Assembly: GCA_047495785.1 (NCBI GenBank)
Contig: JBLDXI010000074.1
Coordinates: 310,001-374,000, forward strand
Direction: 5' to 3'
Length of the DNA stretch: 64,000 bases
DNA from: Lepidodermella squamata
Lineage: Eukaryota > Animalia > Gastrotricha
A program made the translations under genes and the position numbers. The notes under the pieces are model-generated. The model was not told the origin of the DNA. It ran no database searches and was given only the letters and a program-made list of their open reading frames with translations. Positions 301 to 50,484 of the stretch are shown piece by piece (the first letter of the stretch is position 1; each line of letters starts with the position of its first letter).

Positions 301-3300
301 ATGGCCGAATCTGGCAAGCGACGTCTTTCAACAGCTTCGAACAGTGAAGAAGATTTAGAAAAGCGACCCAGACTTGAAGATGAAGATAACGAGGATGAGA
401 GCTTGACTTCGCCGGACGAGTTAATTAAAATAACGTTCGACGTTGTGCTCAATGAAAGCCTCAGCGTGTTCCGGGCTTACAACAAGAAGCCGCCCGGGCA
501 ATTTACAGTCACCCTCTACTGCCGGCCGGAGCATTTGGGCGACGGCAAATTTACGCCGTTCAACGCGAAAATTTTCAACGAGTCGCTGAATGTGTCAACA
601 TGCAGATATCGCAGCTGTTTCAATTTCAACCGCGATTTCGCTGTGACCAGCGAATTTTTTGTTGATGTCGACTTGGGTTTTGCGGTTCCGGTTCAGCGCG
701 TTGAAATTAAAGATTCGCTGAGATTTGGCCGGGTTTACACGGTTTCAGCCGGGTTGAACTGTTTAGGTAGCCATGACCACTGGACCTATGGCCATTGGAG
801 GCCTGCGTGGCATAAAAATATCCCGCCTTATTCGCTGGAAGAACTCGCCCAGCCCTCGAAAAGCCTTGAATCTGCGGTTATTGTTCCGGAAAAATCGCGA
901 AATACTCCCGTTAACGTGTTTCGATTTGAAATGAATTTCTATGCGAAAGGGTCGTTTTTCACCGATTTTGTGCCTTATGTAAGGCTTCATGCTGAAACTA
1001 AGAAAACGCGGAGTTTCGATGTAGCTGTTCGGTCTCATTCGGATGAAGTCTGCGAAGAAGAAACCTGCTTTCCCGGGTTGGATTTGTTGCCTGAAAAAGT
1101 TATCCTGCGAATTGTTCAATGCCTTAATGGCGCTGCTCGAACGAGGGTGAGCTAATTATTTTTAACGTTATTTATTTAATTGTTTCAAAAATCTAAACAT
1201 TTTGATTTTCATTCCTGAATAACTAGCATCGTTGAAGTTAAAGATGGTCCTGTCTAATTTTGAAAAAATTGTTACTTTACTTTATTCTTTATTCTTTATT
1301 ATTCTTCTTGTTGGCGAACAACAGTGGCGAAATTGTCAAAATGGTCGAAATGGTTTTTAATTTCGATTTCATGATTTTTGATTTCATAAACTGATTTAAT
1401 AGGATTATCAGCTACAAAATAAGGAAAACAAGGATTGTTATGACCAAGTCTAAGAACAACGCATTTGCTCATATTAATAGACATCTGATGTGAGATGAAG
1501 AAGTTAGTAACAGAATTTATGTCATATATTGTACAAGTTCAGGAGAAATGCCAGGCTTTGAATATAGCTTAACGTCATCAGCGTACATTCTTATAATACA
1601 TACAATTTTTCACAACAAAGGAAGATCATTGATAAAAATAAGAAACAACAATGGACCTAGTACACTACCCTGAGGAACACCAGATGAAACATTTGACCAG
1701 GCAGAAAATGAATTATTGATTGCAACACGCTGAAGGCGATTTGATAAGAAAGCATTTATCCACTCAAGAAGGTGTTGTAGATAATAATCACGTTGGGGAA
1801 AGGGACTGAAGGGACTCGTTGATGATAGTGGCAATGCGGCTTTCGACACAGACGCTTTAAATAATGTGGAAGAAGTCGACGCTTGCGGTCCAATATTGAC
1901 ATTGTCGGGGTTCTTATGAGGTAGCGGATTATATCAATCGGTCGAGCTTCAAAATTCGTCAAAGACCCGAAATCGCCCTCAATGCTCACGTAGCGGGAGA
2001 TTCGATGCTCCAAATTATTAAAAAGGATTGTGCTGCCCATCCGGCGTCCTCCACTAAAAATAAAGCAATGCTGATTCCAGACTCGACTGACTGATTTTCA
2101 GCTGATATCCTTGAAGAACGCGAAATCTGCGCATTTTTCGCAAGGACTTCATCTTTTCTTCTCTTTTATCCTCAGTCAGAGCAGTTTTAACTGCCGCCCG
2201 GGTACTCACGACTCTTACAACCAGTGTTTTGTAAATTGAACTGAGAAAACTGAGAAGGCCTCCTTGTAGCAAGGCCGTGTCCACTAGGCCCTAGGGCAAT
2301 CGCATTTTTCGCCTGACAGAAAATCCAGGACTGATTCACGTCACACTCACCGCTGAACCAAATACGGGCAATTTTAGCATGTTTGTCGTTAGATTTATTG
2401 GTCCCTTGTAGGTGAAGAACATGCACAGGTAAGTTTGATTGAAAAAGATGGCTTTTCACCCATTTTACGGGCGTAACAAGAAATATAGCCAAGTTAGCGG
2501 CAAAATTGATGGGATATATGGGATTGTAGTATCAGTACTATTGGATTCAAAATCCGCAGTACCATTTCTTGCAGTTGGGACAGGCTCCCGGGTAGCATTG
2601 GCATTGATAAGCGTTAACTCTTCGGCCCAGGCACGTTGTAGTGCCGGACAGCACACATTGGCCTCCAGTTTTTCCGAGGCATTTACAACGGGTATCGCAG
2701 TTTTGCCACAACACATTATTGCCCGCTGACGACCAGCCAGAACAGCGGCTCCACGTGTCCCAGCAGTCGAAAGACTGCACTTGATCGACAGCTACAGCCA
2801 AGGTCAAGCCAATGATGCACAGGAGCAGTGAAGATTTCATTTTAGCGAGTTTGATAGCAGATTAAACAGATTAAACTGTCTTGTTTTTCCTGTTTTTTTA
2901 TATAGTCACATTGCCTAATTAAGAATAGAAATTTATTCCAACTGAATGCGTAATTAGTAATTAATCATGGGACTGGGCTTTTTATGTGTTTTTCAATTAT
3001 GAATGTAAACACGGATTTCCGGTTTAAATTCTACTCTCTCGAATCCTTGCTTTTTTACCAAGCGATAACACGGCCCTGAGGAAACATGAGGAAAAAAGTT
3101 TGCTTTTTGTCAGCCATGCCGGCGATAACGTCGCAGTTTTGTATCTGATACTCGTCACCGAAATGCAAATGTTCATAAATTTCTGTCGAATTGAAAAACA
3201 GCTCTCCGAGCTGTGGCTTTCCGTTTTCGCAGAGCACTAAGTTCGTGGCGAATTTTTGTTTCATGCCATATGCGAGGGGATTCATTGGGCCGAGGAATCT

Positions 3301-6300
3301 CAGAACTCCAATGAACGGTTCCGATTGAAAATTAGTTGACATGCTGATGAGAAGACGACGAAAACTTGCAATACGCAAAACAAACAACTTTCACGAGCCA
3401 AAAAATCTAACAAAAATTGAAAAATATTAAGATTGGTAATTAAGCAGAGGCCCGCTGGCTCGGGAGATGCGAAATTTTTCCATAATTTTATGTAAAAACT
3501 AGCTAATAAATTTCTCGAGCAGCATGTAAAGACAACACTCATCTAAACGTTTAAACCTCAATTTTTATGATTGCTCAATTTCAAGCTGCGGATCATTAGC
3601 GACTGTCTCAAATTTAGCTGCATAGTATCGCATAATATACATTTATATTCAATTTCGATTGAATACAATAACTTGATGCAATTTTTGCAATTTTCAGGCT
3701 ATTCTAAGTCTATCTGGAACCTGCCGAAAGCTACGAGAAACTTTGCGCGACCCGCAGCTACACAGCTCCTTCGACTTGAAAGCTGTGCCAGTCGCTCACA
3801 TCAACCCTCAGTTATTCAATTTCTTCGCCGAACGTGCTGTTTTGGGGCGAAATTTGACGAAAATTCGATTATCATGGGTCCCGCATCTGCCCGCCGGTGT
3901 GAAACTAACCGACTTTCTTCGTCACCTTCAGCCTATTTTGGTCAGTTTTGTCGCGGAGGCGTGCCCGTTTGTCGACGATAAAGTTCTGCGAGTTCTCAGC
4001 GAGACTCAGCCGAATTTACGCGATTTAGATCTAACTCGATGCCGTGGCATTTCACCTGATGCTTTTCGATTCATTCTGTCTTTCAAGCAGCTTAAAAAGC
4101 TCTCAGTTCAGCATACAAATATCGGTGAACCAGCGCTTTGTGAATTGCTGCGAAATTTCACGCAACTCGAAGTTTTGAATGTTTCATTTCTCAACTTTTT
4201 GGAGGGTAAATTTGCGCGGCATTCTGACCCGACAGCCGGGCCGGTTTTCAACGAGTTGATTCGAGCCGAATTTGTGCCTAATTTGATTGCGTTGAAAATC
4301 AATCAAATGCAAAGTGACACGGCGAGTTTTACGGCGTTCATCAAGCGATGCGTGAAAATGGAAGAACTGCACTCGGTTCAGCCGGATTTCTACGAATGCC
4401 GATGGGAATCGAGTGTATTTTCGGCCATAGCTAGTTCATGTCCGAAACTGCGGCGGTTATCACTCAGCGAAATGCTGTACAAAAACGCGATGACGGAGCA
4501 GAATTTGCTGGGTTTTGTTGAAAATTGCCCGGATTTGGAGTACCTATTCGTGGTACCAACGTCCTGCACTGCTGAGGTAAGTAATCATTCAAACAACGTT
4601 TTTTCCATGTAATTATTAGTCATCTGAATTAATTAGCATTAATTTGCCTTCTCATTTTACGAAATATCCCATCGCCACATATCGGCACGGAAATGATTAG
4701 CGGATGTGCGAATTGAAAAAGTAGCTCGGTTCAGCTAATCTGGTTTATCTTCGTTCATTGGATAGGTCATTTTTACTGTTGTAAGGATCCTGGTTCAGCG
4801 CAAAGTGTTGTTGAAAGTGATTCGCGCCAACGCACTTGAAACATATGCCAACAACCAACCAACCAACCAACCAACAACAGCACGAATGGCGACATTTGAA
4901 AAACAGTTACGTTAGTATCACAATGCAAATAATAGAAAAACCATGATATTAATGGGTATTAAAATGTTTGGCTCCCACACCGGTCCACTTTCAGCTCCTC
5001 CAGCAATGCCTCTTTGAGGCTTGTTAGAAGTGACTGTAAATCTGGTAAATGCGGCGGGTAACGACTGCATGCCCTTCAATGTTTCACATTAACTGGCCTT
5101 AACCAAATTTGATAAAGGGCACTCTGGGGTGGAGAGCCACCGTGCTTTGCCAGAACGCTTGCTCCAAAGCCTCATTTCAAGAGCTCCAGCTAGCCACGGC
5201 CGCTTGGTGGCAATGGGTCTGGGCGGGAGCGTAATCCATTAGCACCATTAGCTAAATGTACAAGGGTAGTTGGAGGTGCTTATTTGGACAGTCAGGGAGT
5301 TCCCCACACCACTTTAACTCGGTCTTATCAGCACTGATCTAGCCGATGACTCGTTGCACAAAGACTGGCCAGACTAGCGGTCCTGTTAGACCAAAAAAGT
5401 GTTTTTTTTTCAGAAAGGAGACAGCGAAATAGATCAGATCAGTCCTCAGTAATATCAACAAGTGTACTCTGCTAGCGTGCTCGGTCGCGAGGGCGAGGCA
5501 GGCGTCCAAGCCGTCGTCCATAGTATCCGACTTGACCAGTAGCCCAGCCGGTGACTCTGTTGAGCTGACTTGCGAGGTGTGACCGGAGGTGTGTCGACAT
5601 TTCCCACTGGGACCTGTAACGAGGGACACCTAGTAGGCGTTGGCCGGCAGGTTCGACAAGTTTATCATTAACGTCGTCAATGATGGACTGGCGTATCTCG
5701 GGCCAATGAGCGTTCTTCTGCATAGCCCATAGTGCTTCGTCCGCCTTTTCCTGTTCGTCAGTAACGTCGTTCAGTTCATGCTCAACTGTGGCAACTATAT
5801 ATGAGCGTCTGCCTGTATACTATACAAAAAATACAAATACAAAATACAGAAGAAGGTCGGTGCTGCAGCCTGCAGCATGGCGGACATTTCCGCCAGCTGC
5901 TGAATGTTCGGGATTTATGCGGCACAATTCGACGCTCTATGCCCCGGTCGCCGCATTCAGTGTTACTTACACAGGCATTTGAAGTGCGTAAGTAGGTGTG
6001 TCAGCTAGCAACGGTTAACAGGTAGTTAGTTACAATTGTTACAACAGCAGTCTCAGAAGAAATGAAATTTTTTAGAGATAAGTGCATAACGGGCATTGGC
6101 TATATGAACATGAATAATGAATTTGAAGAGAAACCACCACCCAACACACGCACACTCGTGATGGGAACGCGTATAATATGTAATCTCGCGATAAACAAAA
6201 CTGGAAGTCAGGGATGACGTGAAAAGCGGCTTTTGATAAAAAATCAAACTTGCGAGTTAAGTGCATAATTTTTGTGGTAGTGCTGAATCTGCTGAAGTTT

Positions 6301-9133
6301 GATCGTTGGGGCTTGTAAAAAGCATTAAAACATGGCCTTAAAAGCTGTCAAGGTTGAAGGCTGAGTGTAAAGGTCCCCATTCTTTCAACGCGTCTGCGCT
6401 ATGCGACAACTGATGCACAGCCAGGGTAATGAACTCGTGACCGTAGTGATCCGAAATCGTTAAGCCAATTGTTGAACATTTGTTGAATGTCAATCGACTG
6501 ACCGAACAAATTACGGTGGCAAGAAACGTACGGCTGTGATGCTGAGGGTAGCAATTAGTAAGCGAAAAGTAGGAACTTTCTATGGAAACACCGTTTGTTG
6601 ACATTGGGTTAGTCATTCCAGCACCGTCCATGTAAAATTATACTTTGGCGAATAGTAGTGCGTTTGTGGATCTTCAGGAAATCGGCCGCTGTACAACTCG
6701 CCGTGATGAAAGTCGAGCATATAGCGGCCGTTATCAGCTCCAGGAAGTGGAGACTGGATCAATTTTAGCGGCTTGGAGTACGAATTATATTCTTGACCAG
6801 CCGCCTCAATACCGAGTGTGCGGCGTCAACCTCAAACATAGTATGGCCCGCTTCAAAAAAGTTGACCTGGATGTACGTAAACTTGAATTTACGGACGGCA
6901 TGGACCATAGCCGCGATGATCTGTCGGTTTTTTGCTGCCCTAAAAAAGAACCGACATTCCAATTATAAGTTTTTTATCAATTTACTCGGTGAACTGAGAC
7001 TCATGTTAGTCCCTACCATAGCTAAGCAAGGATCAATAAGAATATCGGTTTTGTAACAGTCTCGCAATAGGCGTCCTTAGTTTCGGCGTCGAAGATGCTT
7101 TTCATGCTTCCAATGAACAAAAGCTTTGTTAGTTATACCTGTAACAAGTACCGGACCGGTACTTCACAGGTTTCTAATGTCAAGGTTCAGCGACTTGAAG
7201 ACATAACAAAAAGTTACAGTAAATTTATGCGCATAATTTTTGAACGAATGGATTTCTAGTCACTTGTAAGCGTAAAAATCTAAATTTTGATTTTGGATGT
7301 TGATGCCAGTAAAATTTGTCTTACTATTTCTTTTAGAATGTGGACGCTTTGCTAGCTGTGAGCGAAAAATTGGCATGTGTTGTGCTTGTCGGCCGAAATA
7401 TCGAACCGGCTGACGTCGACCGGCTGGAGCACAAGTACCCGCGAAAACGCCTCGTCTACGTCGATTACCGGCCCAGCTGGCAGCTGCAGCGCCTCGATTC
7501 CAACGAAAGCAGCCTCGCATCGGCACTCGAGTCGGCTGATAACTCCGAGAACGCGGATTCAGACGACGAAGATGAGGATATGTCTTCATCAGGCAGTGAG
7601 TACTCTCGAACTAGCCTGGAGCTATTCCAGGAAGAAACCCATGCTCGAGATTCTGCCCTGAGCACAGCGATTAAAGACGCGACTAATTCGCTGGAAAATA
7701 TCAAGGTCCATCTGGAAAATCTGATTGCAAAAGGGCCGTATTTTGGTAAACGGAAGACATTCCAAGCCGATATTCGGTTCGCCATGGCAACGGCTATCGA
7801 CCAGAAACGATTCGATGTCCTGAAGCTACTACTCGATTTGTCACCTGCCAAAGATTTGCCTGAAATTTTCGCTGGCGATTATCCAGTTTTGAATTTCGCC
7901 ATTAGGAAGCGGTGTATTGAAGCTGTCAAAATTCTGCTAAGCAAAGGCGCGCCTGCTAACTACGAGTCTGGAATTTCGCCGCTTGGTCTTGCTTTTACGA
8001 CCCTGCTTGATTTGTTTGAAGATCCCGATTTTGATGAGGCGAATAAAGCCGTGTTTCTTGAAATCACGCAGCTGCTTTTCGACCATGGCGCTGATGCGTT
8101 GGTTTTCAATACGTTCGAAGCTGGGACGAATCTGCTTCATTATCTTCCGTACCTTGTCGGAAGTGGTAAGTCACATTCCATAAATCAAGTTTAAATTTAG
8201 CGTCATGTAGTGGGGTGACTAAAAATGACTCGGTGACTTCGGCGGAAATTTGAGTGTGCGAGTTAGCATTGGGAATTTTGGAATTGGGCGATTGAGATTG
8301 AATATATCTTTTGTTTTTTAGCTCCCGAATTCGCCGATCTTGTCATTGAACGCACGCCATCTGCGGCATATTTCGCGCAAGAGCTCGACTCGACTTATGA
8401 CCCAGAAGGCCCGACCCCACTCGCGTCTGCCTTCGATATGATCGACATGAGCGATGAGCTGCCTATCGTTCAAAATATTTTCCAAAAATGTATAGTGCCA
8501 CTTATTCGAAACGGGGCGCCTTACAAACCGGACTTTTGCTTCTCGACCCGTTCGAACTTCAGCGACTATGTTGCCCTGAATCATCATTTCAGCCGCAGGA
8601 TCTGGCAACAGCCCCATGTTGTCGCTCATCTGCTGATCGAAGCGCGCCGAACTTCGAAGTTAGACGTAGCGGCGCTGATGAAAGTTTCAGCGCCGAGAAA
8701 TGTCCCGGAAGCTGGGTTAATCCGGCCTAACCCACCTCCGATCGCTCATCGCAATATAGCTGTAGCAGTAGCAAATCAGCAGGATAACAACAACGTCGAA
8801 GCAGGTCGTCAAGATGAAGACGGCGATGATGAAAATGAAGTCTCTGGATTTGCCATGGAAACCGATGATGACAGCGAAGATGATGACGACGGCTTCGATG
8901 GCGTGTCTGATGAAGAAGTTGGCGACCTAATTCAGCCTTTTGCTCGCTACATTCGCTCGCAATTTCCGCGCAATTTACAAGCCCAATGCCGGACAGTTAT
9001 TCTAAACTTGCTGCCGGCTGGTCCGCGGCGTTGCGATGCGATTGCCTCTCTGGATTTGCCTCGTTCTGTTTTGACTTTTCTTAACTTCCCCGAGTTTGAC
9101 GTCCCGGTTGTTGCGGCAAAATCTGCCGATTAA
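301..9133 (+). CDS. Chimeric FBXL4-like F-box/LRR plus ankyrin-repeat/SOCS-box protein (~1121 aa; exons 301-1146, 3698-4576, 7337-8165, 8322-9133)
   Basis: All three GT-AG junctions are phase-compatible. The F-box is rebuilt across intron 1 ([17 protein letters not shown]|[21 protein letters not shown]). The LRRs resemble FBXL4 ([30 protein letters not shown]). Exon 3 starts [12 protein letters not shown], matching the paralog's last LRR exon (NVADILDACPQL), then runs without a stop into ankyrin-like [19 protein letters not shown]. The C-terminal SOCS box is [23 protein letters not shown]. Confidence 0.8.
1299..1790 (-). mobile_element. Degenerate non-LTR retrotransposon (CR1/L2-group) RT fragment
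   Basis: Broken frames encode [34 protein letters not shown] and [16 protein letters not shown]; it lies in intron 1 of the F-box gene. Confidence 0.8.
2547..2840 (-). CDS. Macin-family antimicrobial peptide precursor (theromacin/hydramacin/mytimacin-like), 12 Cys in the mature region
   Basis: A signal peptide ([17 protein letters not shown]) is followed by [38 protein letters not shown], the macin cysteine pattern. Single coding exon. Confidence 0.9.
   Translation of the reverse strand: MKSSLLLCIIGLTLAVAVDQVQSFDCWDTWSRCSGWSSAGNNVLWQNCDTRCKCLGKTGGQCVLSGTTTCLGRRVNAYQCQCYPGACPNCKKWYCGF
2893..2905 (-). promoter_or_regulatory. Putative TATA box of the macin gene
   Basis: CTATATAAAAAAA on the minus strand about 55-60 nt upstream of the ATG at 2840. 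Confidence 0.45.
4848..4878. repeat. (CAAC)n microsatellite
   Basis: ccaacaaccaaccaaccaaccaaccaacaac. Confidence 0.8.
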
Positions 9134-9313
9134 GTATTCATTTATTTCAGAATGCGCACTAAAGAATCATTTTCTTCTTCCGCTTTCTATCTACTTTTGT
9201 CACGTGATTCATTTTTTATACTCGAAATGTCTTGCAAATAAATCCTTGGTTTTATACAAATTTCGATTCTCTTCAAAATTTGTTAATTCGAATTTGTAGG
9301 CTGAATCAATTTA

Positions 9314-12300
9314 ATGGCTGAATTTCCTGATGGAAGTGGCGGTAAACGACCCCGCTTGTCACTGCCAACCGGCCCATTACTCATCAATTTCGACTGTTTG
9401 GACGATGACGATTCAGACGATAGCAGCTATCACCCAGATAAGGGCGAATTACAGGAATTTCAACGTGAATCCGAGGCGAAAGTCACGAAAATTATCAAAT
9501 CAGTACGAGACAGCGAAATTTCTCTTCTCGAGTTTGAAAAATTAGTCGCTGAGCGAATTCAATCGACATCGCCAATCGACCATGAGCTACTTGTCACAGA
9601 AATCCGATTTGCTATGGCAAATGCGATCCAGTTCAAAAAATGGCAGATTTTGGAGTCGCTGATCAATTCTTGCCCCGGCCATTTGTTACCTGAAGTTTTC
9701 TCCGGATCGTATCCGTTGTTGAATTTCGCAATAAAAATTGCTAGTGTTGAGGCTGTTAAGCTGCTGTTAGACCGGGGCGCTCATTGTTGGGCTGATTTTG
9801 CGTCGTCCAGCCTTGAAACCATAATCACAGCGATTGAAGACGCGTTCGATTACGAATATTTCACTGAGACGACTTCAAAAGCTTTCTACGAAATTTTCCG
9901 GCTGCTTTTCCGATTTCAAGCCGATCCTGCGAAATGCCCGCGGCTTGTCAGCCAAATTGCCAGTATCGCCGGTCGTTCGCCGGAAATTGCGACGTTGTTG
10001 CTGGAGAACACCCCCGGCAAGTGTTTTGTACCGACTGAATTTCGCGAAGGCCGATTGCTGCCTTCGACGATCTTCCTGGCGTTCGAGTCCATCAATTCTT
10101 GGGACACTATTAATGTACTGGAAAACATTTTCAGGTATATATGATACGGCTTGAACAGCTTGTTTTTTCCAAAAATCTTCTTCTATAAGTTGACACGTGC
10201 CGACTAGAAATATTTTCAGCAAAACAATAATAAATGCTGAGATTTTAAAATCTTAACAATAATAGCAATAACGCACCGATTTCTTAGCTATTAGTTATCG
10301 ATCAAGGTCAAATTTTTCAAAATCGTACCAAGTTTTTTGAAATATGATTATCTATATAGGAATTTTCAAATAATTTTTTTCTGAATCGCGAATTAGAAAT
10401 TTTTTGATTTCGTTTCAACTCAGGAAATTTTCGAGTTGCTATATAGAGGGTTGCTTCATTCTCAAAATTTGTTTCAAGTTCAACTTACTTTCATATATCA
10501 AAACCATTATCGACGGTAATTGAAGTCAATCCGCAGCAGGTAAAACAGTCAAAACAACTCAAACAAAACAATAGTCGGATGAAAAACTCGTGAAAATATT
10601 TTTCAAACCCCTAAAATAAAAATTAACAACGTTAAGTGATTTTGTAGCCGCAACTTCTGAGAACTTTCAACTCTCAGATATAATTCTCAGATATAAAGGC
10701 AACACCATCAATACAATCATTGATAGTAATGATGGTGTTGGATATTCGTAAAGGTAAGCCATTTGCCATCCGGTCGACTGGTAGCCGGGTAGCCGCCTGG
10801 GCCTGGTTGAGCCGGGTTGCCAGATGGCTGAGCCGGGTAGCCACCAGGTTGAGCAGGGTAGCCAAACGGTTGGGCCGGGTAGCCGCCAGGTAGAGCCGGG
10901 TAGCCGCCAGGTAGAGCAGGGTAGCCACCAGATTGAGCAGGGTAGCCAAACGGTTGAGCCAGGTAGCCAAAGGGTTGGGCCGGGTAGCCAGCAGGGAATA
11001 GATTGCGCGCAACAGCGGCAGTAGATGGGGTAGCAGTTTGTTGAGTTTGTTGGCGGTCAGGCCTTTCTTCACTTGGGGTGACGAAGTTACAAGTGAATTT
11101 TGATGGCGCAGTTGCTATAACAGCATCATAATTGAACAACGGCAGGGGCAGAGCCGGCCCTGGTGGCGCCATTTTCGGCGATGGCCATTTAAAATCTCTC
11201 CTCAGCGTAGTCTTATCACCGTATTTGACCTTTGGCGGTCGAACAGGCGGCGGCGACGGCGAGTGGCTGAACAAAGGCAGCGGCTGAACGAGCTGCCGAA
11301 CTGGCTTAACTGGCTGCTTAACGATAACCCTCGGCAGCAGCTGCACCAGCTCACGTTGCTCTGCAGACATTTGCACCGCCGGCCCACCAGTGAGCGTTCG
11401 CGGCGGTCTGGCGATTTCCGGGAAAGCCCGTTTAGAGGCCGTCCCGGTCTTTGGCATAATGGCAGACTCAGGCGACAGTTCAATAGGCGAGGGAGAATCC
11501 GAAACTACAAGAGGGGAGTGGAATTTCACCTTATTCGAAACCGGCCGTTCCTCCGATTCCCCGCTTTCCTCGAGTAAAGAAATAACCGGGCGTCACCGCC
11601 GTCGCTGTCCTCGCCGTCGTCAGGATCGACGAAATGCCCGTTCTCGTCGATCGCGGGCAGATGAGCGTTTCGCATCGCCATCTGGTATACGCGATGCAGA
11701 ATTTTCGAGTTATTTACGTCGTCTGGCTCGTCGTACTGGTTGATGGACTCCACGTTGGCGTGACCAGTATGTGGGCGGTTGCGTGCGCGTCCACCCCGTT
11801 CGACCGCAGCCAAAAAACGGTGAACCGGCGGTTGCTCTGCATGGAAATATTCCGATCAGAGCCGTCCGGATTTTTATCAAGGCCGACACCTTGCATCATC
11901 GCACGAAGGAATCCGCCGATGGTGTTGCCGCCGAGAACCAAATGGTAGGATTCTTCGCTAACTTAGCCTTGGATCGAATGGGCTTTAGGAACCAGGGTGC
12001 TCCTGGCACGTTTGATTCCGGGTCGCGTCTGTTGATAAAAAACGGTACAGCCGGACAAAGCAGAAGTGATTATCCGGATTTTCGTTATCCAGCAGGCCTT
12101 TCGAGGCTTGCCGGATTTTCCGTCGCCACGTCTGAAATATCGTTCAAAATGTTTGAAATCGTACCAAATTTTTGAAAAATCAATTTTCTATATAGAGATA
12201 TTTTGTTTTGAAATCGTACCGAACATTTTCAGGTATACGATACGGCTTGAGCAGCTTGTTTTTTCTAAAGTCTAAAACAACGGACGGAAGTCTAACCGCA

Positions 12301-15180
12301 GTAGGTATAAAATAGTCAAAACAACTCAACAAGTCGGATAAAAAACTCGTGAGAAAAATATTTTTCAAACCCCTAAAATAAAAATTAACAACGTTAAGTG
12401 ATTTAATCTAGCCGCAAATTCCAAGCAACTCTCAACTCTCGGATGAAAAGGCAACACCATCAATACCATCTTCTTCATTGACAGTAATGATGGTGTTGGA
12501 TGTTGGTAAGGGTATCCGATTTACCCAAACCTTCGCCATCCGGTCGACTGGTTAAGCCGTGTTGCCGCCAGGTAGAGCAAGGTAGCCACATGGTTAAGCC
12601 GGATAGCCGCCAGGGTATCCACCAGGTAAAGCCGGGTTGCCAGCTGGGAACAGATTGCGCGCAACAGCTTGAGAGGAAGATGGGTTGGCAGTAGATGGGG
12701 TAGCAGTTGGTTGGCGGCCAGGAGTTGCTTCACTTGGGGTGACGAAGTCACAAGTGAAGTTCGCTGGCGGAGTAGCTATTACGACCTCATAATTAAACAA
12801 CGGCGAGGGAAGAGGCGGCCCTGGTGGAGCTATTTTCGGCGATGACCATTTATATTCATTCTTTGGACCGTGTGGGATTTGTGGCTTTCGGATGGGCGGC
12901 GGCGACGGTGAGTCGCTGAACAGAGGCAGCGGCTGCACGAGCTGCCGAACACTTAGGGTCAAGTTTCAGACAGTGTGGCTTAATCGAGCCGAGGCATTCT
13001 TTTTCGTGAGCAGTATTATCGGATTGAACGAAAAACGCTAATGGTACGGCTTTGTTGTTACCAGCATTGATTCCCAGCAATGTACAAAACGCGTGGCCGT
13101 GTTTTGTGACGTTTGCATTGGTTGCATCGAGAAAATACATGTCATACAATGACTGTTAAGCAATTTGTTCTTGTTGCCAGGTAGTCATCATGACAAGAGC
13201 GCTTGTCGTTGTCTTCTTCGACCATTTTTGAGACGCTAGCAACCTCGATAGAAGCGAACATTCCCATCTCGGAGGCAGTGTGCCCTTTCACAACCGTTCG
13301 GTAACCGTTCATAGCGTAACCGGGCTTCCAAACCTCCTTGCGGCATGACAAACGATGGAGGTGGAGGTGGAAACGGGATAGGCGCGGTGACGGGATAGGT
13401 GGGTACGGGTTGACAACGATTTCTAAGCTCAACCACCTCCCAGAAGCCCAACCCACGAGATGCTTTAATGGCTGTGGCGATGGCCTTCACACTACACGAT
13501 TCCTAATGGGGGCTAACGTAATGTTCTGTAGAATGAAAGGGATGTACAGCAATTTCCAGTCGTGTTCACCACTCATGGAAGCAGCTGCTTCGCCAACCTG
13601 GGACCTAGATAGTCTGAAATCAAACTTAGCATCGAGGATGCCGTCTGATGCAAAAGCCGTATGTGCCATGGTCTTTACATAGAACTCGATCTCAGACTCG
13701 GGTTCGGGCAGAAATCGATTTTGGAAATGAATTTGAAACTCTAAGAAAGAATTCGGCCGAACCTGCGACTGTTTTAGCCCCAAATTCTGGAGACCAAATT
13801 TGATTGAAGATAGAAAACCCTCGCTCTGCCTCGGTGCTGTTCGCTGGTTTCTCTAATATTTTTGCCAGCTGGCCTTGTGGCACTTGACCACGCTTGGCTT
13901 TTCGGAAGTCGGAACCGCCTGGTGGCAATCTTCACATCGTACTTGAACGATTTATCCTAAAGAATGCAGCTCTGCTTCGCCTTGCGGATGCCGATCAACA
14001 CAAGGTGCAACAGGCCTTTGATCAGCGGGCAAACGACTTACATACATCAACAGTTTCCGGAGTATCCGTAGTAGGCGGATATTTTAAATTAGGTGGATAG
14101 TGGGGATTATAGGTCTAATATGATCCGTATGATCGCCTGCATCGCCTGGATCGACGACTCGGTCAGCTTCAATGATCATATTCTTCAGAATATCGAGATA
14201 CTTCGCGACTCTTGCAGCGTCTCTAAGACAATTTAAAGCAGAATTTGGGCACACGATCGATCTTAATTTCTTTGATCATATGCATGCAGCATACGGAATT
14301 CAACGGATCCGGTGATCTTGTAGATCGAGATAGCACGAATTAGCAGAAATTCCTCTCTTTGATTGAAAAGAGTATCACAGCCGTGAATTTCATGATGTAG
14401 TCGCGTCGACATGATGTTAGTTGAGAAACGCGTTATTTTCAGAAGTTTTTTCATTCATTTTCAAGCAAATGCAAGCAATACATAACGAATTAATTGGACA
14501 CTAAATATTAGCTAGTGTTGAAAGTGGAAAATTAAAAACAATATTATTGCCAATAATGCTGATAATAATGAAAATAGTTGGAATAATGGTTATACGGTTC
14601 ATTGAAATTTGATTCTGAATTCATTTTTAGATTTGGCATCATTCCTGTGGTGAAAAATGGCGCACCCCTGCTGCCTGCAGATGACATGTTCAGGACCGAT
14701 CTTCCGCCAGCTCTGAACCTCATTTCACTCGAGAAACGATGCAGCCGCAAATTCTGGCGCCAACCTTTTGCCGTCGTTCGACTCGTTATTGAGGCGCGTC
14801 AAACTTCGTCCTTGAATATGAAAGCAATTCGCAAGTCACTACCAGCATTGTCACCCGAAAAGCCTTCGCAGAATAATGAAGAGGACAATGTTGAAGGTAC
14901 CAACGAGGTGGTTGAAAGTGACCAACAAAACGAAGAAGAATCTGAATCGGATTCTAGCAGCGAAGCGGGCGAAAATCTCGAGGAATGTTATGCCCTCTTA
15001 AATTATCTAAGATCTGAGTTCCCACGCCGGCTTCAAGCCATATGCCGTACTGTTATTTTGCGCAATTTACCAATAGGCCCGAAACGGGCTGATCACGTCA
15101 AATCGCTGGATTTGCCGCCTCCTCTCATTTCGTTTTTATTGCTGCAAGATCTTGATCTACCTCCAGTTTGTTCTAACTGA
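9314..15180 (+). CDS. Ankyrin-repeat/SOCS-box (ASB-like) protein, stand-alone paralog (~456 aa; exons 9314-10134, 14631-15180)
   Basis: Aligns to the C-terminal half of the chimeric gene (EIRFAMANAI vs [10 protein letters not shown]; SYPLLNFAIK vs [10 protein letters not shown]; NIFR|FGIIPVVKNGAP vs [16 protein letters not shown]). SOCS box PRRLQAICRTVI..LDLPPPLISFL. Phase-2 GT-AG junction. Confidence 0.85.
10135..12150 (-). mobile_element. Crypton-like tyrosine-recombinase transposon remnant (frameshifted) with Pro/Gly/Tyr-rich downstream repeats
   Basis: Minus-strand frames at ~11700-12110 give ENPDNHFCFVRLYRFFINRR..PWFLKP..W..VLGGNTIGGFLRAMM..G..ISMQSNRR..HTGHANVESINQY. This matches the DUF3504/Crypton YR C-terminus (CPV.LY..Y..RP, LG.NTI, NHSLR, TGH.N..S...Y). 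Confidence 0.65.
10780..11000. repeat. 21-bp minisatellite (GYPA(Q/L)P(G/F) heptads on the minus strand)
   Basis: About 9-10 imperfect copies of gagccgggtagccgccaggta; a shorter copy lies at ~12545-12645. Confidence 0.85.
12222..12950 (-). repeat. Second, diverged tandem copy of the 10123-11310 segment
   Basis: aacattttcaggtata..gatacggcttga, aaaatatttttcaaacccctaaaataaaaattaacaacgttaagtgattt and the PLPLFS.SPSPPP..FTC.FVTPSE coding block all recur. Confidence 0.85.
12960..13460 (-). mobile_element. MULE (Mutator-like) transposase fragment
   Basis: YFLDAT..VTKHGHAFCTLLGIN..KAVPLAFFVQSD is the first catalytic Asp region; the upstream YRYER..VRFYRGC segment is FLYWCH-like. Confidence 0.6.
13790..13980. 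mobile_element. hAT transposase fragments
   Basis: Minus-strand PANSTEAERGFSIFNQIW matches the hAT C-terminal dimerisation motif. Confidence 0.5.
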
Positions 15181-15438: not shown

Positions 15439-18400
15439 ATGAGTGAGAAAAAGGCAAGTTCTGCCCTTCCCGATCTTATCGAGAAGAAGCGCGGCTACGT
15501 TGACCAGCAGCAGATCGAATCGAAGGGCGAAGCTGAAACCTCCGTCTGCCGGTTGCTGCTCAATTTCCGCCGCCGGGAAGGCTTCGGCCCTCGCGAAGCT
15601 GGCTACGTTAAAGTCAACATTTACTTCATCAACCGGAAAGAACTTGACGAATCAGAATCTCGCGATGTCGCTAATACCTACCCAATCCGAGAGAGTGAAC
15701 GCAACGGCTCGGCTGGCGAAATCGGGTTTACACGCATGATTGACCCCGCCAGCACATGCCGCGAATCTACCTTATGCCTACAAGACGCGTTTGATAAGAC
15801 CTCAGATTTCTTCATCGACGTTGACTTGCACATCAAAATGCGAATTGTCAAAATTGAGGTTGAACAATCTGTTCATTTCGGCCGAGTTCGACGCGTGTCG
15901 ACCGGGCTGCGATGCCATGGCATGCACGATCACTGGACTAATGAGCTGTGGCTGCCGAACTGGTCTGTTGATATCGAAAATTCAGCTCTGAAATCGAATG
16001 CTGCTGCTAATTTACTCGGCCTAGCGCCTGAAAAATCCGTTTTCATGGTTCCGATGCGAAAAATCAAACCATGCGACGCGTTGCGAGTTGAATTGGCAAC
16101 TCAGCAGCGTGACATGTGGGTTCCTGAGCTGTTTTTGGCTGCAAAATTGGAAGCAGAAGCTGCAGGTCCTAGGATTACCTTGTTGAAGCCTATTGCTGGC
16201 GTTACAGAGAAGATCGACTCTAATTCTAATGAAAAAATTGAATATCAGGAGAAGCGATCGACCAGCATTGACTCCCTTCTACCGGATATTTTGTTCAGCA
16301 TCGTAAACTGCTTGCCAAGTGAAGACAGACTGAAGGTAAGCCTTGTAATTTTCTGCAATAAGTTTGCGTTCCTCGCGTTATTGCGGAAATCCCTCCATCC
16401 CCCATAAATGGAAACGAAAAATTTCCCAAAACCCAAAACAAGTTCGAGGTCAAACTAGTAAGCAAACAGGAATCGCACAATCGTCTCGAGTCCATGTAGA
16501 GCGCGCATCAATAATACCAAATTGATCCAACAAGTTCAAACTAGTAGAACCAAGTAGAAGGCAAATGCATCTTTATTGATTTATCTTTAGCATCAATTCA
16601 TAATTAATAATCAATAAACACCATCATCTTCTTCTTTCCTTCTCATCATCGTTTCAATGGGCGCTGAGGCTTCTCTTGCGGGAAGTTCCATCAGTTTGTC
16701 CCCCAACGCGCTCGTTTTTGAGCCAGTAGTGGAGGCAAACAAGCGCGTTGAGCATCACTCCAGAAAGTTTGTTTCGCCATCGCTAAATGACAAACCCACA
16801 ATGGCTGAAATCTAATACAAATCTAGTCGCTGGTATCGCCAGTAAAAGATGGAACATCTACCAAGCTATCAGCAAAGGTAACAAGATCGGAGAACCCGGA
16901 GACTTTCTTTGCCTTGTCCTCCGGACGATTCGCAAGCCCGCACATTTTCCGCCCCTTCTGGTGCAGCTCTGCTAGGGCGAAGTAATAGGGCAAAACTTTC
17001 CTGAGCAGCAGATAAAGCAGAGTATCTACTCGCCTGTTTACGTAGCCCTTCAGATGGGTCCACTTAAGCTGCCACCAGAAGTTTTCGATGATCTGCCAGA
17101 AGTAAATGACAAATTATATTAAATGGAAAATTACGTTATTAGTTCGCTGGTATTGCAGGCTGAAATCGCACCACAGCTTACCTTGTTCTGGCCCTATCCA
17201 GTTGTTCCAAAGGTGTGCCTGAACTTCTTCTGGGAACTCCCCGGAAATTGAGTCCCACAACAATATCACATCTTCGTACTAAATAACTCATAAAAATTAC
17301 ATTTCCAAGTTGTTGTCATAATTACCGAGTCGGCAACTTTGATTGTTCTTACCAACTCCATAACCTGCCTTCTCAGCCGCTTGTCTTCGTCACTTGGACT
17401 AAGACACTTCGATGCGGCAGACAGCAAAAAGCGGAAAATGCTTTGCAGCGCATGGAAGTAGCAGAGGATAAATTGGCATGAGGGCCACAGCTTCTTAATA
17501 ATTGAAATAGACTTCTGGCCTTTATCGACCATGAAATTCCTGCAAATTATATCGTAAATTATGTTGAAAAATTATAAGAACTGCTATATAAGACTTTGAG
17601 AGGTAAAACGACCGAGATGGTCCTGGCGACGAGCTCCTTCCTCTTGCCAATACTTGATCAGCTGGTCTTTGGCTGCGAGGAGATATTTCAGCATATGGCA
17701 GGTCGAATTCCAGCTGAAAGTGACAGCAAGAATCAAGGAAAATAGAGCTGCAGCAACGGAACGGACGATTCTTTCAATTCGGAAAACCTTGTGGCGACTA
17801 GATCCGCAACAACCCCGGCGTTCGCTCGCACGCCCTTGGCCACTACATTGACCAAGTCGGCACGAAGGGCGGAGGCGCGAGCCTTGCGAACGAAACACCA
17901 CCTTGCCAGCCGGATGACCTGGCCGGCAAAGGTGATGACGGTGAAAAAAAAGCGAGGCGTAGTAGTCGTGGCAAGCTAAGTCTTATTTATACGTATTAAG
18001 CTGAATAGTCTTGAACCATCTTGAGCATAAACAATTCCTCAATCAATTATGTTCAACTGTTCTAAGTAACACCGGCGATTCGTAGGATGGGGTTGCAATT
18101 TTGACCATTTTGTCGAGTAATTGTAACCTCCCAGGATGCTGATATTAGCAAAAGTTGCAGGGTTTCCACTAAGTCGCGGATTTTCAGATGTTTGTAGTGT
18201 TTTGTGAAAGGCGATGCCTGCGCTATTTGTGAACTTCGTTGTTTAGACATTGATTTTTTAAATTATTCTTCTTGCATTTAGTCGCTGATTTCATTGTCGG
18301 GAACTTGCCGACGTCTGCGCGACCTGTTTCGCCACCCATCCTTGTACAACTCTGTCGATTTCAAAGAGTTCTCACCTGCTCATCTCACAGAAGCCGTGCT

Positions 18401-21400
18401 CAACTTTGTCGCCGAGCGAGCAACGCAGATGAGGCATCTGCGAATCGCCTGGTTGCAGCATATGCCCGGAAAAGCTGATTTCGCTTCGTTTTTACGCAGC
18501 CTCAAGCCGACGCTAACGTCATTCATCGCCGAATCATGCCCAGTTGTCGACGACCAGCTGCTTCGTGTCCTCGTTCAAACTCAACCTCACATCGAAACGC
18601 TGGATTTAGCGCGTAAGTTTAAATAATTTTTTCTTGAATTACTGATGTGTCCAAATTGATTTGACATCTTCAATTTAAGCCTTATGATGTTACTTTTGAA
18701 ATACCAAAGTATAAAAAATTTAAAAATCGAATGTTACCTGTAGTTTTGCTTAAAAGATCAAAGATCCGAGAAACCTTTCAAGTAGATTTGTAGATTTGAA
18801 GTAGATTCAAGAGATGTGCTTTTTGAAGACATGATATTTACACTGATACACTGATACACTGATTTATTGTTGCAATTTGTCTCGCGACGTTTAGCAATTA
18901 AAAAGGGTCGAGGCGCCTCACCACCGATATAGTATATTGTTCTAGTTCACAGGCAATGTTTTTAGTATATTTTACAAAATTAAAATGAGAGCTATTTACG
19001 ACCTCAGAGGGTATAGAATTCCACGCCGCACGCACACGTCGCACAAATGAATATTGATAGTTCATTTTTCTGAACTTCTCCATCACAACCGCATGATTTG
19101 GCAATCGACCGTTTTTCGATATAGTGAAGAAACGAGAAAATTGTTCGTCCACCATATTCAGATAAAGCTTATGGCAGAGAGCTAGATCGTGCAGAAAACG
19201 ACGCATCTCTAAGGATAACATTCCTAATTTCCGAAGTCTTTCTTCATATGAGGCACCTTCAATTGTCGAGTAGTATGTGCTGCGATATAATAATCTTTTT
19301 GTGAAACGGGCTTGTACAGATTACGCCCATAGTTTCAGCATCTCATGAAGAAGATGAAATATTTTGGTGATTTTTGAAAGCCGGCGGTTATTGTGTGGGC
19401 CGTGGTGGCGGTTTTCTCCATATTTTAATGGCTCCAACGGCGGCGTCATCGGTGCAACCTGCTGAACAGCAGCGGTCTCTCCAGCGGTGTGAACGAAAAA
19501 CCTTTCTTCACAGTTCGAAGATTTCATGTTGGCCATAACGGAGGCGTCTTCCGTAACAACCGGCTGAACAGCAGCGGCCACTTCGCTGGCTTCTTCAGCG
19601 GTCTCAAACTCGCGACTCATTTCGATACTAGAATCCAGGCAAACAGCCTCGTGAACTCGTAACCCGACTTCTGCTCCTTGCGAATGTTGCTCCTCGCCAT
19701 CAAGCTCATGCACTTCAAGCCTTAGGGGGTCATTATCACCCTGGGCCTGCAAGGTTAGTTGCTGGGTGACCTGATTTGAGGTCTCGGTCTCGCAGCTCGG
19801 TTTGACAGGCGGAACTAGAGCTGAAGCCTGTAATGGGCGGTGTCTGTCTGCGAGACTCAGCAGATTCTCAATTAATGCATTTTAAATCGAAATTTGCGTC
19901 CTGTTAGGAAAGATGATAACCACTTGAATAGACATTCATTAATATTAAACGATTTCAAGACGCCGAGAAGTTAAGCGTGTGGGACCGCATCGAAAGCTTT
20001 AGAAATTTCAAAGTATGGTATTGAATCGGTACTGAAGCATGATTTCAAGATTGAACAGAAGTCTATCGAAAGTAAATCGTCAAATACTATCTTCACGAAG
20101 TTAAACTTTTTACTATCCTCCCCAAAGACGGGTCGATTTTACAGGTGATATACCAGCGTAAATGATTAAATTCACGGATTTTCATGGCCCACGACGATAA
20201 GCGTCGTCACGGTTCGTCGATCGGGCGCCACGGCCATTTCGACTCGTCCCACGAAAAGAGTGCGTCTTTTAAAAGAACAACGTAGGCTTCGCGGCAGAAA
20301 AAGGGGATAGCCCTCATCATCGAAGGATTGGCTTTTTGCAAGCACCAAAATAGTGTCCTAGCGAACCGCATCCAAAAGATGTTATATCGGTCTGTCGGCA
20401 GATCGTGCAGCCAGACTTGCTGGCGGCATGTCCACAACGGGCAACTGCCTCGGCAGGCGAGCCGACGACGATGAGCCGAACTCTGCCACGAAACGGGAAA
20501 ACAAATTTGCAACTATATTGGTTCGGGATTATCCTTCAAAAACTATTTTTCAAAGATACGGTACGCAGGCAGGTTGAATGAAGAGTTGAATGAAGAAAAG
20601 GCAAATCGCACGTCCATTATTCTACCAATTGTTGTATGCCAATTGTCAACGATATCGTAATTTCCTACCATTCTCTCGAATATTTGTACGAACGAGAAAA
20701 ATAGACGCATATTTGACTTGTTGAATCGCCAAAGGCAAGCCAGATTCTATGAGTAAGCAATTGAATGAATCCGCCAATAACGCATTCTTATCGTTATCAT
20801 AAATCCCTACCTTCCATCAATTTGGTTTCATACTGATTAATAAGTTGTTAGTACTGATGAAGCTTATACAATGTTTTATCAATTTAGGATGCCACGCAAT
20901 CTCACCCGAGGCTTTTCGATGCGTTTCTCAACTCACCGAGCTACGACGAGTTTCTTTTTACGACACCAACATCTCCGAGGCGTCTCTGCTCATGATTTTC
21001 GACAAATGCGAGAAACTCGAGGCAATCAACATTGGCGCGTTGCAGCATTTCAACGCATGCGATGGCAATATCGACAAGGTTGTAACGAAAATTGCCGAAA
21101 AGTACGGTGCCACAACTCTCCGCGCTATCTACCTGTATTTCGTCAAATTGTCTAACAAATGCTTGGTCAACGATTTTCTACCTCGCTGTGGTCGTTTGGA
21201 AGAGTTGTTCATGGGTGGCTTTTGCGGCTCGGGCGAGTGGAATGCGGAAACTTATCGCCTGCTAGCTGTTTCTTGCCCGCGGCTTCGTCGTCTTTCGATT
21301 GCAGCTGTCTCGAAGAAGGCCGACGTGAAGTCGTCAGACGTTGTCAGTTTCACAAAGCATCTCAGCAAGTTGGAGCACCTGACGCTGATTCCAACCGATG

Positions 21401-24144: not shown

Positions 24145-25590
24145 AAGAACTTGTTAATGACTGTTTTCTTACCAAATGAGCTGGAATCTCCGGTGACGAT
24201 AATCTTCCAAGTTGTGTAATGATTTGCGACCAATATATATGCTGTAATAACATCGACTGTGCTGAAATTTTTCTTTTTGAAAATAAAACTATTCTGTGTA
24301 TATCATATTACTGGAAAATAAAACTTTTCAAATCTTGACAAGGCTTCGTATTTTTGTTGATTTCGGTGGTTGGTTTCATAAGTGATTTCATAACGACGTG
24401 ATATATTTGATGACTCAATATTTGCTCACATGACGGGTCCAGGTCCGAACTTTGTTGGCAGGAACCTCGGTTTCGGCTCCTCAAAATCCGTTGACGAACA
24501 AGTTTTCAGTCGAGGGTCCTAATTGCCATTATGTGGTCTAGAATGATGTCTTTTGCCTGCTTTAGAAGTAGTTGGAGAGAAATGTGTGTTTATGAAGCTA
24601 AGAAACCGTTTACATTTCCTGCCCACCTGCCTGTAGATCAAGGCCGGCGGATTTGATCTCGATGCTCAAGGAGGCTTATAGTAGCTTAACCATTAGACGC
24701 CGGCGCAATGACGTGTTAACTCGAGCACCTTTCAGAAAATCCCAGAAAATCAAGAAGAGGCTGAAATCAAATTCTGAGTCGGCAGAAAGTCTTGCATTTA
24801 GCTTTAGATTTTAGATTGAAAGCCGAACCTCTTTTTCAGAAGAAATTTACCTGGGTTGCCGTTGCTATGACGTGTTAACGCGTTTTCATGACGTGTTAAC
24901 AAGTCATTTAAAATCTTTCTAACTATTTTCGACCTGGTCGGAATGGCTTTGAAAATTTGGATTTTCGGGGAGTGCTTGTTTCTTGCTATTGATTAATCAT
25001 AATTTATGACGCAACAATGGGTTCGATAGCCCCAATCCTCCGACCACGGTGAATTTTCTCCGGAATTAACGCGTGTACACGTCTTCGGCGGCTAAGGGTT
25101 AAATAGGCTTAAAGTGATCGTTCAAACCATTCCCAATTCCCAGCATTGGGAACTGGTTCAGTGTTCGCCATTTCGACACAGAGGAACCACTCCTGAAACC
25201 AAGTGAAATGGTTACCGGCTTTGTTGACTCTTGGTGCCTCATTTACAGGGACAAGGGGCAGGCAGCTGGAATAGCAGCGCTGCTTGACTGGTGAAAAGAC
25301 TACCAATTATTTTTCGATTCTGAATTTTTTTACGAATGTTCGAATGAGAAGACGTTTAAACAAGCTCATTTTACGAATGTGTCCATCAATAATCTCTTCT
25401 TTCAATTTATACTACTGTACTGTAGTATTTCGAGCAATAACAATTGACACCTGGACCCCTTGACTTGCATTAATCATCCGACAAATTTATTTTGTGTAGT
25501 CAAATGATAGTAGATTTGAAGCGTCTATTTATATACTGCCTACTGCCTATGAACTGGAATCAGCAACATTTCATAACATAGATGGAACAG

Positions 25591-49430: not shown

Positions 49431-50484
49431 AGGACGCCAAAAATTTATAAAAATCGAAGTATGTTTAAAATAATAGTTATACATATTTTATGATATACAT
49501 TATATTGTGTTTGAAAAACAACAGGCGCGCTTTTTGAACATGCGTTTGGAACTTAACCGAAAATCCTCGAAGGGAAGCGCAACTGGACGAGTGCGCTTAT
49601 GAAGTTGCACGAGATATTGCGCAAAGCGTGTTTATTGCTTTTCTTATCTGAAAACTGCGAAAATTGACGCTGACCTACCAGCCGTCAACGAAAGTGCTAC
49701 CAAAGTGCGCCATTATATTCTCGAGTTCCTACCTATCCTGCCGAACATGTAATCTTTCTACCATTCCTCCTGTATCTAAGTATGTATACAGTTGTATGCA
49801 TCATGCTGTAATTAACTTTATGCAGTCCCGGACGCCTTGTTCTTTGCGCTCGAGCCTCCCTTTGCCACCTTTGTACTCATTCTGAATTTTGTAAACATTA
49901 TGACTAATAATAGGTGCAAAGCGAACGGTAAACAATAAAGATTTGAGATTTGAAAGTGAGACCAATCAAGCAAGCTACTTCGGGTGCAAGTCGACAATCG
50001 CCTCATTTTCTAATAACTCGCACAAATTTGGGGATGAAGAATCCCCGAGCGACGATGGCACATTTCAAGCTGTTTCCTTTCAGTATGGTGTTCCTTGTAA
50101 GGCGAACAACGCTCATGATTCGGCACAAATTAGATAACAGGCATAGCAAGCAGCCTAAATAAATTTCGTAGCACTTCCATTCGCCCCTATGCGATATTGC
50201 TCATTGTTCCATTCATTGCTTATTACCTCTTCAAAACAGCTATCGTTTGATTGCTGTAATGCAATATCGTTTTATATGAAACTCTTACTAAGACTTTGCT
50301 AATTGGAAAGCTAGATGAACGCTCAAAAAGCCCTATTTTTGGCAACAACAATTTTGGTTACAACAAAGTAGAAGGATTTCGAGGAACTTCCAAGTGGGAA
50401 ATCCCTAAGAGACCACTATAATAGAATGGAGGTCATAATATTTACCAGAGCAGTTTTGCTTTATTAAAAAAATCACATAATTTC

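Follow-up and report, generated by a model that had tools for sequence, protein, structure and literature searches.

The locus analyzed here raises the question of whether a single protein can carry the docking elements of two different families of cullin-RING ligases (CRLs). These ligases are modular: F-boxes bind Skp1/Cul1, and SOCS boxes bind ElonginBC with Cul5 (or Cul2), their BC box contacting ElonginB/C and a Cul5 box selecting Cul5. F-box and SOCS box normally occur in separate proteins and, to our knowledge, each described substrate receptor carries one docking box, directing it to one cullin family. The window examined here, a stretch of 64,000 nucleotides (nt) from the forward strand of Lepidodermella squamata contig JBLDXI010000074.1 (positions 310,001-374,000; assembly GCA_047495785.1), contains a gene, termed gene A, in which an F-box and leucine-rich repeat (LRR) half is joined in frame to an ankyrin and SOCS-box half. 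Two paralogs, genes B and C, lie downstream, and a counterpart of the fusion was found on metagenome contigs of a distant species, referred to here as the relative. On our reading the fusion is real, transcribed and preserved in evolution, with one mRNA encoding a predicted protein of 1121 amino acids (aa), and we consider it probable that both docking modules in this protein are intact and in use.

Gene A comprises four exons on the forward strand (301-1146, 3698-4576, 7337-8165 and 8322-9133), all separated by GT..AG introns, which splice into a coding sequence of 3366 nt with no internal stop codon and a terminal TAA. The encoded domains follow one another in the order beta-sandwich, F-box, LRR solenoid, acidic linker of approximately 85 aa, ankyrin solenoid, helical region, second acidic stretch and SOCS box. 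Exon 1 (aa 1-282) extends from the ATG at 301 to a donor at 1146/1147 (ACGAGG/gtgagc) and encodes an N-terminus with a basic KRPRL motif, a beta-sandwich of the FBXL4 type and, from approximately 1066, the first half of the F-box, which is split by intron 1 (1147-3697). Exon 2 (aa 283-575), bounded by an acceptor ttttcag/GCT and a phase-0 donor at 4576/4577 (GCTGAG/gtaagt), contributes the second F-box half and most of the LRRs, and is followed by the 2760-nt, phase-0 intron 2 (4577-7336; GT..AG), which contains repeat and transposon fragments. Exon 3 opens at the acceptor ttttag/AAT with the last LRR and its C-terminal cap (7337-7456, aa 576-615), continues through the acidic, serine-rich linker that constitutes the fusion junction (7457-7711, aa 616-700), and closes with the ankyrin region (7712-8165, aa 701-851) at a phase-1 donor at 8165/8166 (GAAGTG/gtaagt). 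Exon 4 (aa 852-1121; acceptor ttttttag/CTC) supplies the helical middle region and the second acidic stretch, and ends with the SOCS box and the TAA stop codon. The original prediction, made from the letters of the window, had proposed the phase-0 GTAAGT donor at 4577 and the TTTTAG/AAT acceptor at 7337, and had read the sequence beyond that acceptor as open from the LRR tail via the acidic linker into the ankyrin region, so that the junction between the two halves lies within a single exon; the splice sites, the open frame and the placement of all three segments in exon 3 were reproduced. It had also aligned the LRR tail with a paralogous exon, NVADILDACPQLRHLVIASKNV..LGEDYP, which was located at 23542 in gene C, where the preceding intron matches in position and phase. 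The tail of gene A aligns both with this last exon of gene C and with the start of the second exon in the relative, in whose structure model it folds as strand-helix-strand.

Transcript evidence was drawn from the assembled contigs of two public runs, X1 and X2, placed on positions 3600-9500 of the window. Run X2 behaves like genomic DNA, with contigs across exons and introns alike, and run X1 is RNA-like, its share of sampled words (0.33) being near the exon fraction of the stretch searched. One X1 contig (record 2, 1091 nt) aligns to 4019-4574 and 7335-7869 with a GT..AG skip of 2760 nt, equivalent to a cut at 4576/7337; of its length, 556 nt come from the LRR exon and 535 nt from exon 3, where it reaches past the linker into the ankyrin region. 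The original prediction had proposed RNA spanning this junction as a check, and the junction is carried by this single contig of the RNA-like run. A second X1 contig joins 8164 to 8321, equivalent to 8165/8322; X1 contigs cover exon 2 over 3779-4574, and one X1 contig extends to 9168, beyond the gene A stop codon. Neither the 4576/7337 nor the 8165/8322 joint occurs in the DNA run X2, though X2 covers the introns, and the joined form is therefore not a processed DNA copy in the X2 genome; such a copy was rejected as the source of the joint. X1 depth is zero across most bins of introns 2 and 3, the sole intron signal coming from repeat fragments, and X2 depth is elevated at 5.2-6.3 kb, inside intron 2. 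The possibility that most transcripts retain intron 2 was likewise rejected, since X1 depth is zero at 4585-4978.

The same arrangement was recovered in a second species. An exhaustive HMMER search with exon 3 as query, run against 1.84 billion representative proteins, returned only two specific matches, P0001 and P0004, the rest being some 300 generic ankyrin proteins. P0001 (541 aa, 43% identity, E-value 2.5e-50) matches gene A from the LRR tail to the C-terminus, that is, exons 3 and 4 together, and lies on four metagenome contigs (L001-L004) from a compact eukaryotic genome. An F-box/LRR open reading frame (ORF) of 571 aa (593 aa on L003) sits directly upstream of P0001 on all three contigs reaching that far, L004 starting inside this ORF, and P0004 (436 aa), the ortholog of gene B, sits directly downstream on both contigs spanning its full length, L003 and L004 ending inside the downstream ORF. 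The F-box/LRR ORF and P0001 are separated by a 66-nt GTGAGT...TTTAG intron, at the place of window intron 2, and splice to a protein of 1102 aa with F-box, Ank_2 and SOCS_box matches above their Pfam cut-offs. At approximately 43% identity, the relative keeps the whole fusion architecture. Exon 1 is 42% identical to the corresponding intronless ORF of the relative and exon 4 is 48% identical to its counterpart. The exon 1/2 splice in the window is supported by this comparison, because the F-box of the relative is uninterrupted and can be aligned position by position over the exon 1/2 boundary. Scans of JGI metagenomes yielded no further relatives, and word-indexed homology searches with the two halves of the relative's protein returned only the queries themselves and no named relatives.

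Both docking modules were identified independently in the two species. In the window, the F-box (1066-3766, aa 256-305, interrupted by intron 1) was assessed as a spliced peptide of 60 aa, which scores 26.2 bits against F-box-like (cut-off 24.3) and 22.9 bits against F-box (cut-off 20.5); neither exon 1 nor exon 2 scores alone, because the F-box straddles intron 1. The uninterrupted F-box of the relative scores 24.6 and 21.0 bits, respectively, again above both cut-offs. An LRR solenoid lies directly C-terminal of the F-box in window and relative, with a match to PF24758 in exon 2 (33.2 bits against a cut-off of 27, E-value 5.4e-8). At the other end of the protein, the SOCS box (8963-9082) consists of a BC box followed by a segment in the position of the Cul5 box, and exceeds the SOCS_box cut-off of 23.5 bits in the window (28.5 bits) and in the relative (31.1 bits). 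Of the domains that the original prediction had named for a Pfam search, F-box, LRR and SOCS_box are above threshold in the window itself, and Ank_2, sub-threshold there, is above its cut-off of 27.3 bits in the relative (37.9 bits); a failure of the F-box or the SOCS box to score, named in the same prediction as grounds for abandoning it, was not encountered. The BC-box consensus L-x3-C-x3-[VIL] is shared by the window genes A and B and by the gene A ortholog of the relative, and an Ala replaces the Cys in P0004. When a profile built from four SOCS-box sequences was compared with the PDB, the top match was the BC box of SOCS4 (2izv, TFPFSLQHICRTVI), with an E-value of 0.24 that is weak and non-significant alone, and the SOCS-box peptide by itself produced only chance matches to homeodomains among PDB sequences (E-value ~1). 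In the Cul5-box position, both species retain the LP and the spacing of hydrophobic residues (DLPRS in the window, IDLPDALLKYL in the relative), and the second Pro of LPxP is found only in paralog B (LDLPPPL).

The two halves also resemble known receptor families in structure, in comparisons (models, Foldseek and ESM Atlas) that were made on the protein of the relative. For the N-terminal half, the top four sets in the Atlas feature search were all FBXL4 (0.96, with 188-195 shared features), and the FBXL4 cluster was the best in the Atlas structure search (template modeling (TM) score 0.54, 379 residues aligned over 22-560) and the only structure row also covering the N-terminal beta-sandwich. 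The top PDB matches of this half in Foldseek were SKP2, FBXL17, TIR1 and FBXL2 in SCF (Skp1-Cul1-F-box) complexes, with E-values from 2.6e-8, and a search against PDB sequences returned FBXL2 only and no FBXL4 chain. The label 'FBXL4-like' given in the original prediction holds as a resemblance, because the Atlas feature and structure searches and the matches to SCF structures agree with it. The AlphaFold model of the N-terminal half has a mean predicted local distance difference test (pLDDT) of 62.7, with values above 90 in the LRRs, of 50-70 in the N-terminal domain and below 50 in the F-box. The model of the C-terminal half averages 60.3, with residues 90-290 at 80-96 and the SOCS box at approximately 55-69, and the linker falls below 50. 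All top Foldseek matches of the C-terminal half were ankyrin-repeat structures, including ASB7-ElonginBC and FEM1, and the Atlas's own model of this half matched ankyrin/SOCS clusters such as ASB4 (TM 0.49/0.63). The ankyrin and SOCS-box assignment of this half is in this way borne out by the Pfam SOCS_box match, the Ank_2 match of the relative, Foldseek and the ASB matches in the Atlas.

Conservation between the window protein and that of the relative was evaluated segment by segment. Identity amounts to 38% in the beta-sandwich, 44% in the F-box, 40% in the LRRs, 22% in the LRR tail, 33% in the linker, 49% in the ankyrin region, 40% in the middle region and 59% in the SOCS box, so that the F-box and the SOCS box rank among the best-kept segments and do not fall below the average of the protein. 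Exonic variation within each species is mostly synonymous, and frame-breaking differences are limited to the 66-nt intron of the relative. Among the contigs of the relative, five differences fall within this intron, including indels that alter its net length by 1 nt and would break a reading frame, and 11 fall within 3312 nt of exon, nine of them at third codon positions; the second-exon product, P0001, is identical in amino acid sequence on all four contigs. In the window species, 31 of the 35 differences listed for exons 3-4 between variant copies in X1 and X2 are synonymous and the remaining four conservative. These sequence comparisons indicate that both halves of the fusion are under purifying selection.

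This pattern bears on the alternative that survives best, in which the fusion is real and one of its two boxes is a structural remnant, the protein acting as a single-cullin receptor, within either an SCF or an ECS (ElonginBC-Cul-SOCS-box) ligase, with an extra substrate-binding or regulatory domain. We regard this as unlikely. Such a remnant could account for F-box scores just above the cut-offs, for a Cul5-box-like segment without the second Pro of LPxP and for low model confidence over both boxes. However, both boxes are independently above their Pfam cut-offs in two species sharing only about 43% identity, they are as well kept as the rest of the protein or better, and key positions are retained in each, namely LPxE..I/L in the F-box and L-x3-C-x3-I in the BC box.

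A second alternative, which we consider very unlikely, is that the locus mainly yields two proteins, the C-terminal one arising from an internal promoter or from a start at the linker Met (aa 656), with the bridging mRNA as a minor read-through isoform. Stand-alone versions of both halves are indeed adjacent, in genes B and C, an in-frame Met is present in the linker of both species, and transcript starts are invisible in assembled contigs. The depth of the bridging contig (24.6), however, equals that of the flanking exon bins, and an independent start for the exon at 7337, which the original prediction had recognized as a threat to it, finds no counterpart in X1, where no coverage adjoins the 7337 acceptor and no separate contig begins upstream of it, within the limit that contigs cannot show transcript starts. 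An LRR tail would moreover be useless on a lone ankyrin/SOCS protein, yet both species encode it in frame within the exon that continues into the ankyrin region. The relative has no intergenic room for a separate promoter, because the halves are only 66 nt of intron apart, and its second exon does not begin with an ATG, the initial 'M' of P0001 being a TTG chosen by the gene caller. The remaining alternative, an artefact in which two genes were merged by the assembly or by a chimeric contig and the fused ORF reads through by chance, has nothing in its favor beyond the general risk of de Bruijn contigs and was rejected as extremely improbable, given that X2 DNA contigs cover most of the stretch, introns included, with few differences, that the same arrangement recurs on four independent metagenome contigs of another species, and that the reading frame stays open for 3366 nt and varies mainly at synonymous positions.

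Several points nevertheless weigh against a fusion in which both docking modules are intact and used. The binding to Skp1/Cul1 and to ElonginBC/Cul5 would follow from family properties only. The F-box scores clear their cut-offs narrowly, the ankyrin region of the window reaches only 23.5 bits (E-value 8.6e-5) against Ank_2, below its cut-off, and the Cul5-box-like segment of gene A lacks the second Pro of LPxP. The structure models are of moderate quality, with mean pLDDT values of 60-63, and low over F-box and SOCS box. On the transcript side, the RNA status of X1 is a guess from its record, contigs cannot reveal where transcripts start or end, a shorter transcript starting inside exon 3 is conceivable and may use the in-frame linker Met, which has a matching Met in the relative, and support for the exon 1/2 junction comes from the uninterrupted ORF of the relative. 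Finally, the fusion was found in two species only, the window species and one relative.

If the fusion protein does use both boxes, which on balance we consider the probable reading, its domain content suggests a two-headed substrate receptor with docking modules at opposite ends and the LRR and ankyrin solenoids placed back to back between them, separated by a flexible acidic linker. By analogy with its family, the F-box would dock on Skp1-Cul1-Rbx1, and the SOCS box would dock on ElonginB/C-Cul5-Rbx2 via its BC box and the LP-containing, Cul5-box-like segment that follows. Such a receptor could alternate between an SCF and an ECS ligase, or could recruit both catalytic arms to one target or complex. 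Simultaneous engagement of Skp1-Cul1-Rbx1 and ElonginBC-Cul5-Rbx2 in a heterotypic CRL1-CRL5 super-assembly is a more speculative extension that we hold to be doubtful; it would place two RING/E2 systems on a target held between the solenoids, where, for instance, the ubiquitin chain might be primed by one arm and extended or branched by the other. The function of the fusion protein is predicted here from its domain content.

The surroundings of gene A provide some indication of its history. Gene B (exons 9314-10134 and 14631-15180, forward strand) starts with its own ATG and encodes a stand-alone ankyrin/SOCS-box protein of 456 aa that is approximately 32% identical to gene A. Gene C (exons 15439-16335, 18282-18612, 20888-21411 and 23542-23904, spanning 15439-23904 on the same strand) encodes a stand-alone FBXL4-like protein of 704 aa, approximately 30% identical to gene A, with an acidic C-terminal tail and no ankyrin repeats or SOCS box. 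The KRPRL motif occurs only twice in the six frames of the 64-kb window (at 361 and 9344), in both cases within the first 25 residues of a protein, genes A and B, and the A and B orthologs of the relative also carry it, after MAE or MAD (L001, ~2730 and ~6395). Because the A-B pair is syntenic in the relative, both the fusion and the duplicate are likely older than the split of the two species. Since genes A and B share the N-terminal MAE...KRPRL, gene B may derive from a copy of the fusion gene through loss of the F-box/LRR block; convergence on a motif resembling a nuclear localization signal is another possible origin of the shared KRPRL.

Gene A and gene B are very tightly spaced on the same strand (9133-9314), in an operon-like manner, and a pattern search located an AATAAA at 9237-9242, approximately 100 nt past the gene A stop codon and 70 nt before the gene B ATG. 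In X1, a 22-nt insertion, AATTTTTTCTTGAAATGTGGCC, occurs at 9131, directly after the T of the gene A stop codon; because the stop stays TAA, it represents an indel polymorphism of the 3' untranslated region between sampled individuals or strains. Second contigs, approximately 8% divergent and differing almost entirely at synonymous positions, were observed in both X1 and X2 over 7840-9470 (exons 3-4 of gene A and the start of gene B), at about half the depth of the main form in the DNA run and with expression in X1 over exons 3-4; they could stem from a diverged haplotype, from a sibling strain or from a close paralog. In gene C, the frame reopens past the predicted stop (23902-24150) into a long acidic stretch, DEYEDDSEGSWEDEDDDGEEGEEEGEEEE, and a further small intron may extend the tail.

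Other features are nested in the introns of these genes or lie further away. Intron 1 of gene A harbors, in antisense orientation, a macin-type antimicrobial-peptide gene (2547-2840, reverse strand), a single-exon ORF of 97 aa that is cysteine-rich, begins with a signal-peptide-like segment and matches Pfam Macin (34.7 bits against a cut-off of 27, E-value 2.7e-8). The same intron contains a reverse-transcriptase fragment (1610-1849, reverse strand) that looks like a decayed copy of the type of element represented by a complete ORF related to long interspersed nuclear elements at 45804-49484 (reverse strand, 1226 aa), which combines endonuclease and reverse transcriptase with a PHD-like N-terminus. 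A proline-rich ORF of 270 aa with tandem GYPAQP/GYPALP repeats is nested in antisense (10717-11529, reverse strand) in the intron of gene B, which is 4.5 kb long. At 3-7 kb upstream of the fusion gene, the relative carries an F-box/FBA gene and a gene for a PP2C phosphatase (L002 97-1989, L003 229-1174), the latter matching PF00481, the general PP2C family.

The original prediction knew of no characterized protein with the full architecture, and our searches of the open-access literature did not turn up any account of a protein combining F-box and SOCS box either, although sporadic predicted proteins with this pair may exist in InterPro. A survey of domain networks (PMC4327156) does not mention the F-box/SOCS-box pair, and no full-length homolog with another annotation was returned among the 1.84 billion representative proteins searched with exon 3. 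A conserved and expressed protein with both boxes would offer a natural test of whether two cullin systems couple on one receptor, a question that bears on cooperation between E3 ligases, on mixed or branched ubiquitin chains and on the engineering of bifunctional degraders. Should dual engagement prove true, the fusion would act as a 'Rosetta stone' placing FBXL4-type and ASB-type receptors in one pathway in this lineage. Genes A, B and C also present fused and unfused relatives side by side, and so constitute a clean case for the study of gene fusion and fission.

Single chains combining the diagnostic domains of two ubiquitin-system families have been described as mixed-family enzymes, which are rare and occur mainly in animals (Mol Biol Evol 2013, PMC3670738); the combinations named there are different ones, with no F-box/SOCS-box pair among them. 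The closest likeness of the N-terminal 615 aa of the fusion protein is FBXL4, the substrate receptor of SCF-FBXL4, with which they share layout and size (a beta-sandwich of approximately 250 aa, an F-box at approximately 256-305 and LRRs to approximately 615). FBXL4 stops after its LRRs, whereas the fusion protein runs some 500 aa further into the ankyrin/SOCS-box module, and the sequence of its N-terminus, with a basic KRPRL and an acidic run, contains no obvious mitochondrial targeting sequence. Two FBXL4-like paralogs are also present here, genes A and C, with C located 6 kb downstream, and the likeness is put forward as a resemblance. The C-terminal half shares with ASB proteins, the receptors of Cul5-ElonginBC ligases, a series of ankyrin repeats and a C-terminal SOCS box whose BC box is canonical, but differs from them in the helical and acidic region of approximately 200 aa between repeats and SOCS box, in the DLPRS that occupies the Cul5-box position instead of LPxP, and in the joining of the whole module to an F-box protein; by sequence, no specific ASB ortholog emerged from the 1.84 billion representatives, the matches besides P0001 and P0004 being generic ankyrin proteins. 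At the level of ligase assembly, multi-cullin and E3-E3 complexes are known to form from separate subunits, as in CUL7-FBXW8 with CUL1 or SCF with ARIH1, and one example of an E3-E3 assembly, PDB entry 7b5l, turned up in the Foldseek search with the N-terminal half. In these systems, as might be the case for the fusion protein, two catalytic arms are brought to one receptor or substrate. Their partners are separate, non-covalently associated proteins, whereas in gene A two classes of substrate receptor are covalently joined within a single chain, around which the corresponding assembly is putative.

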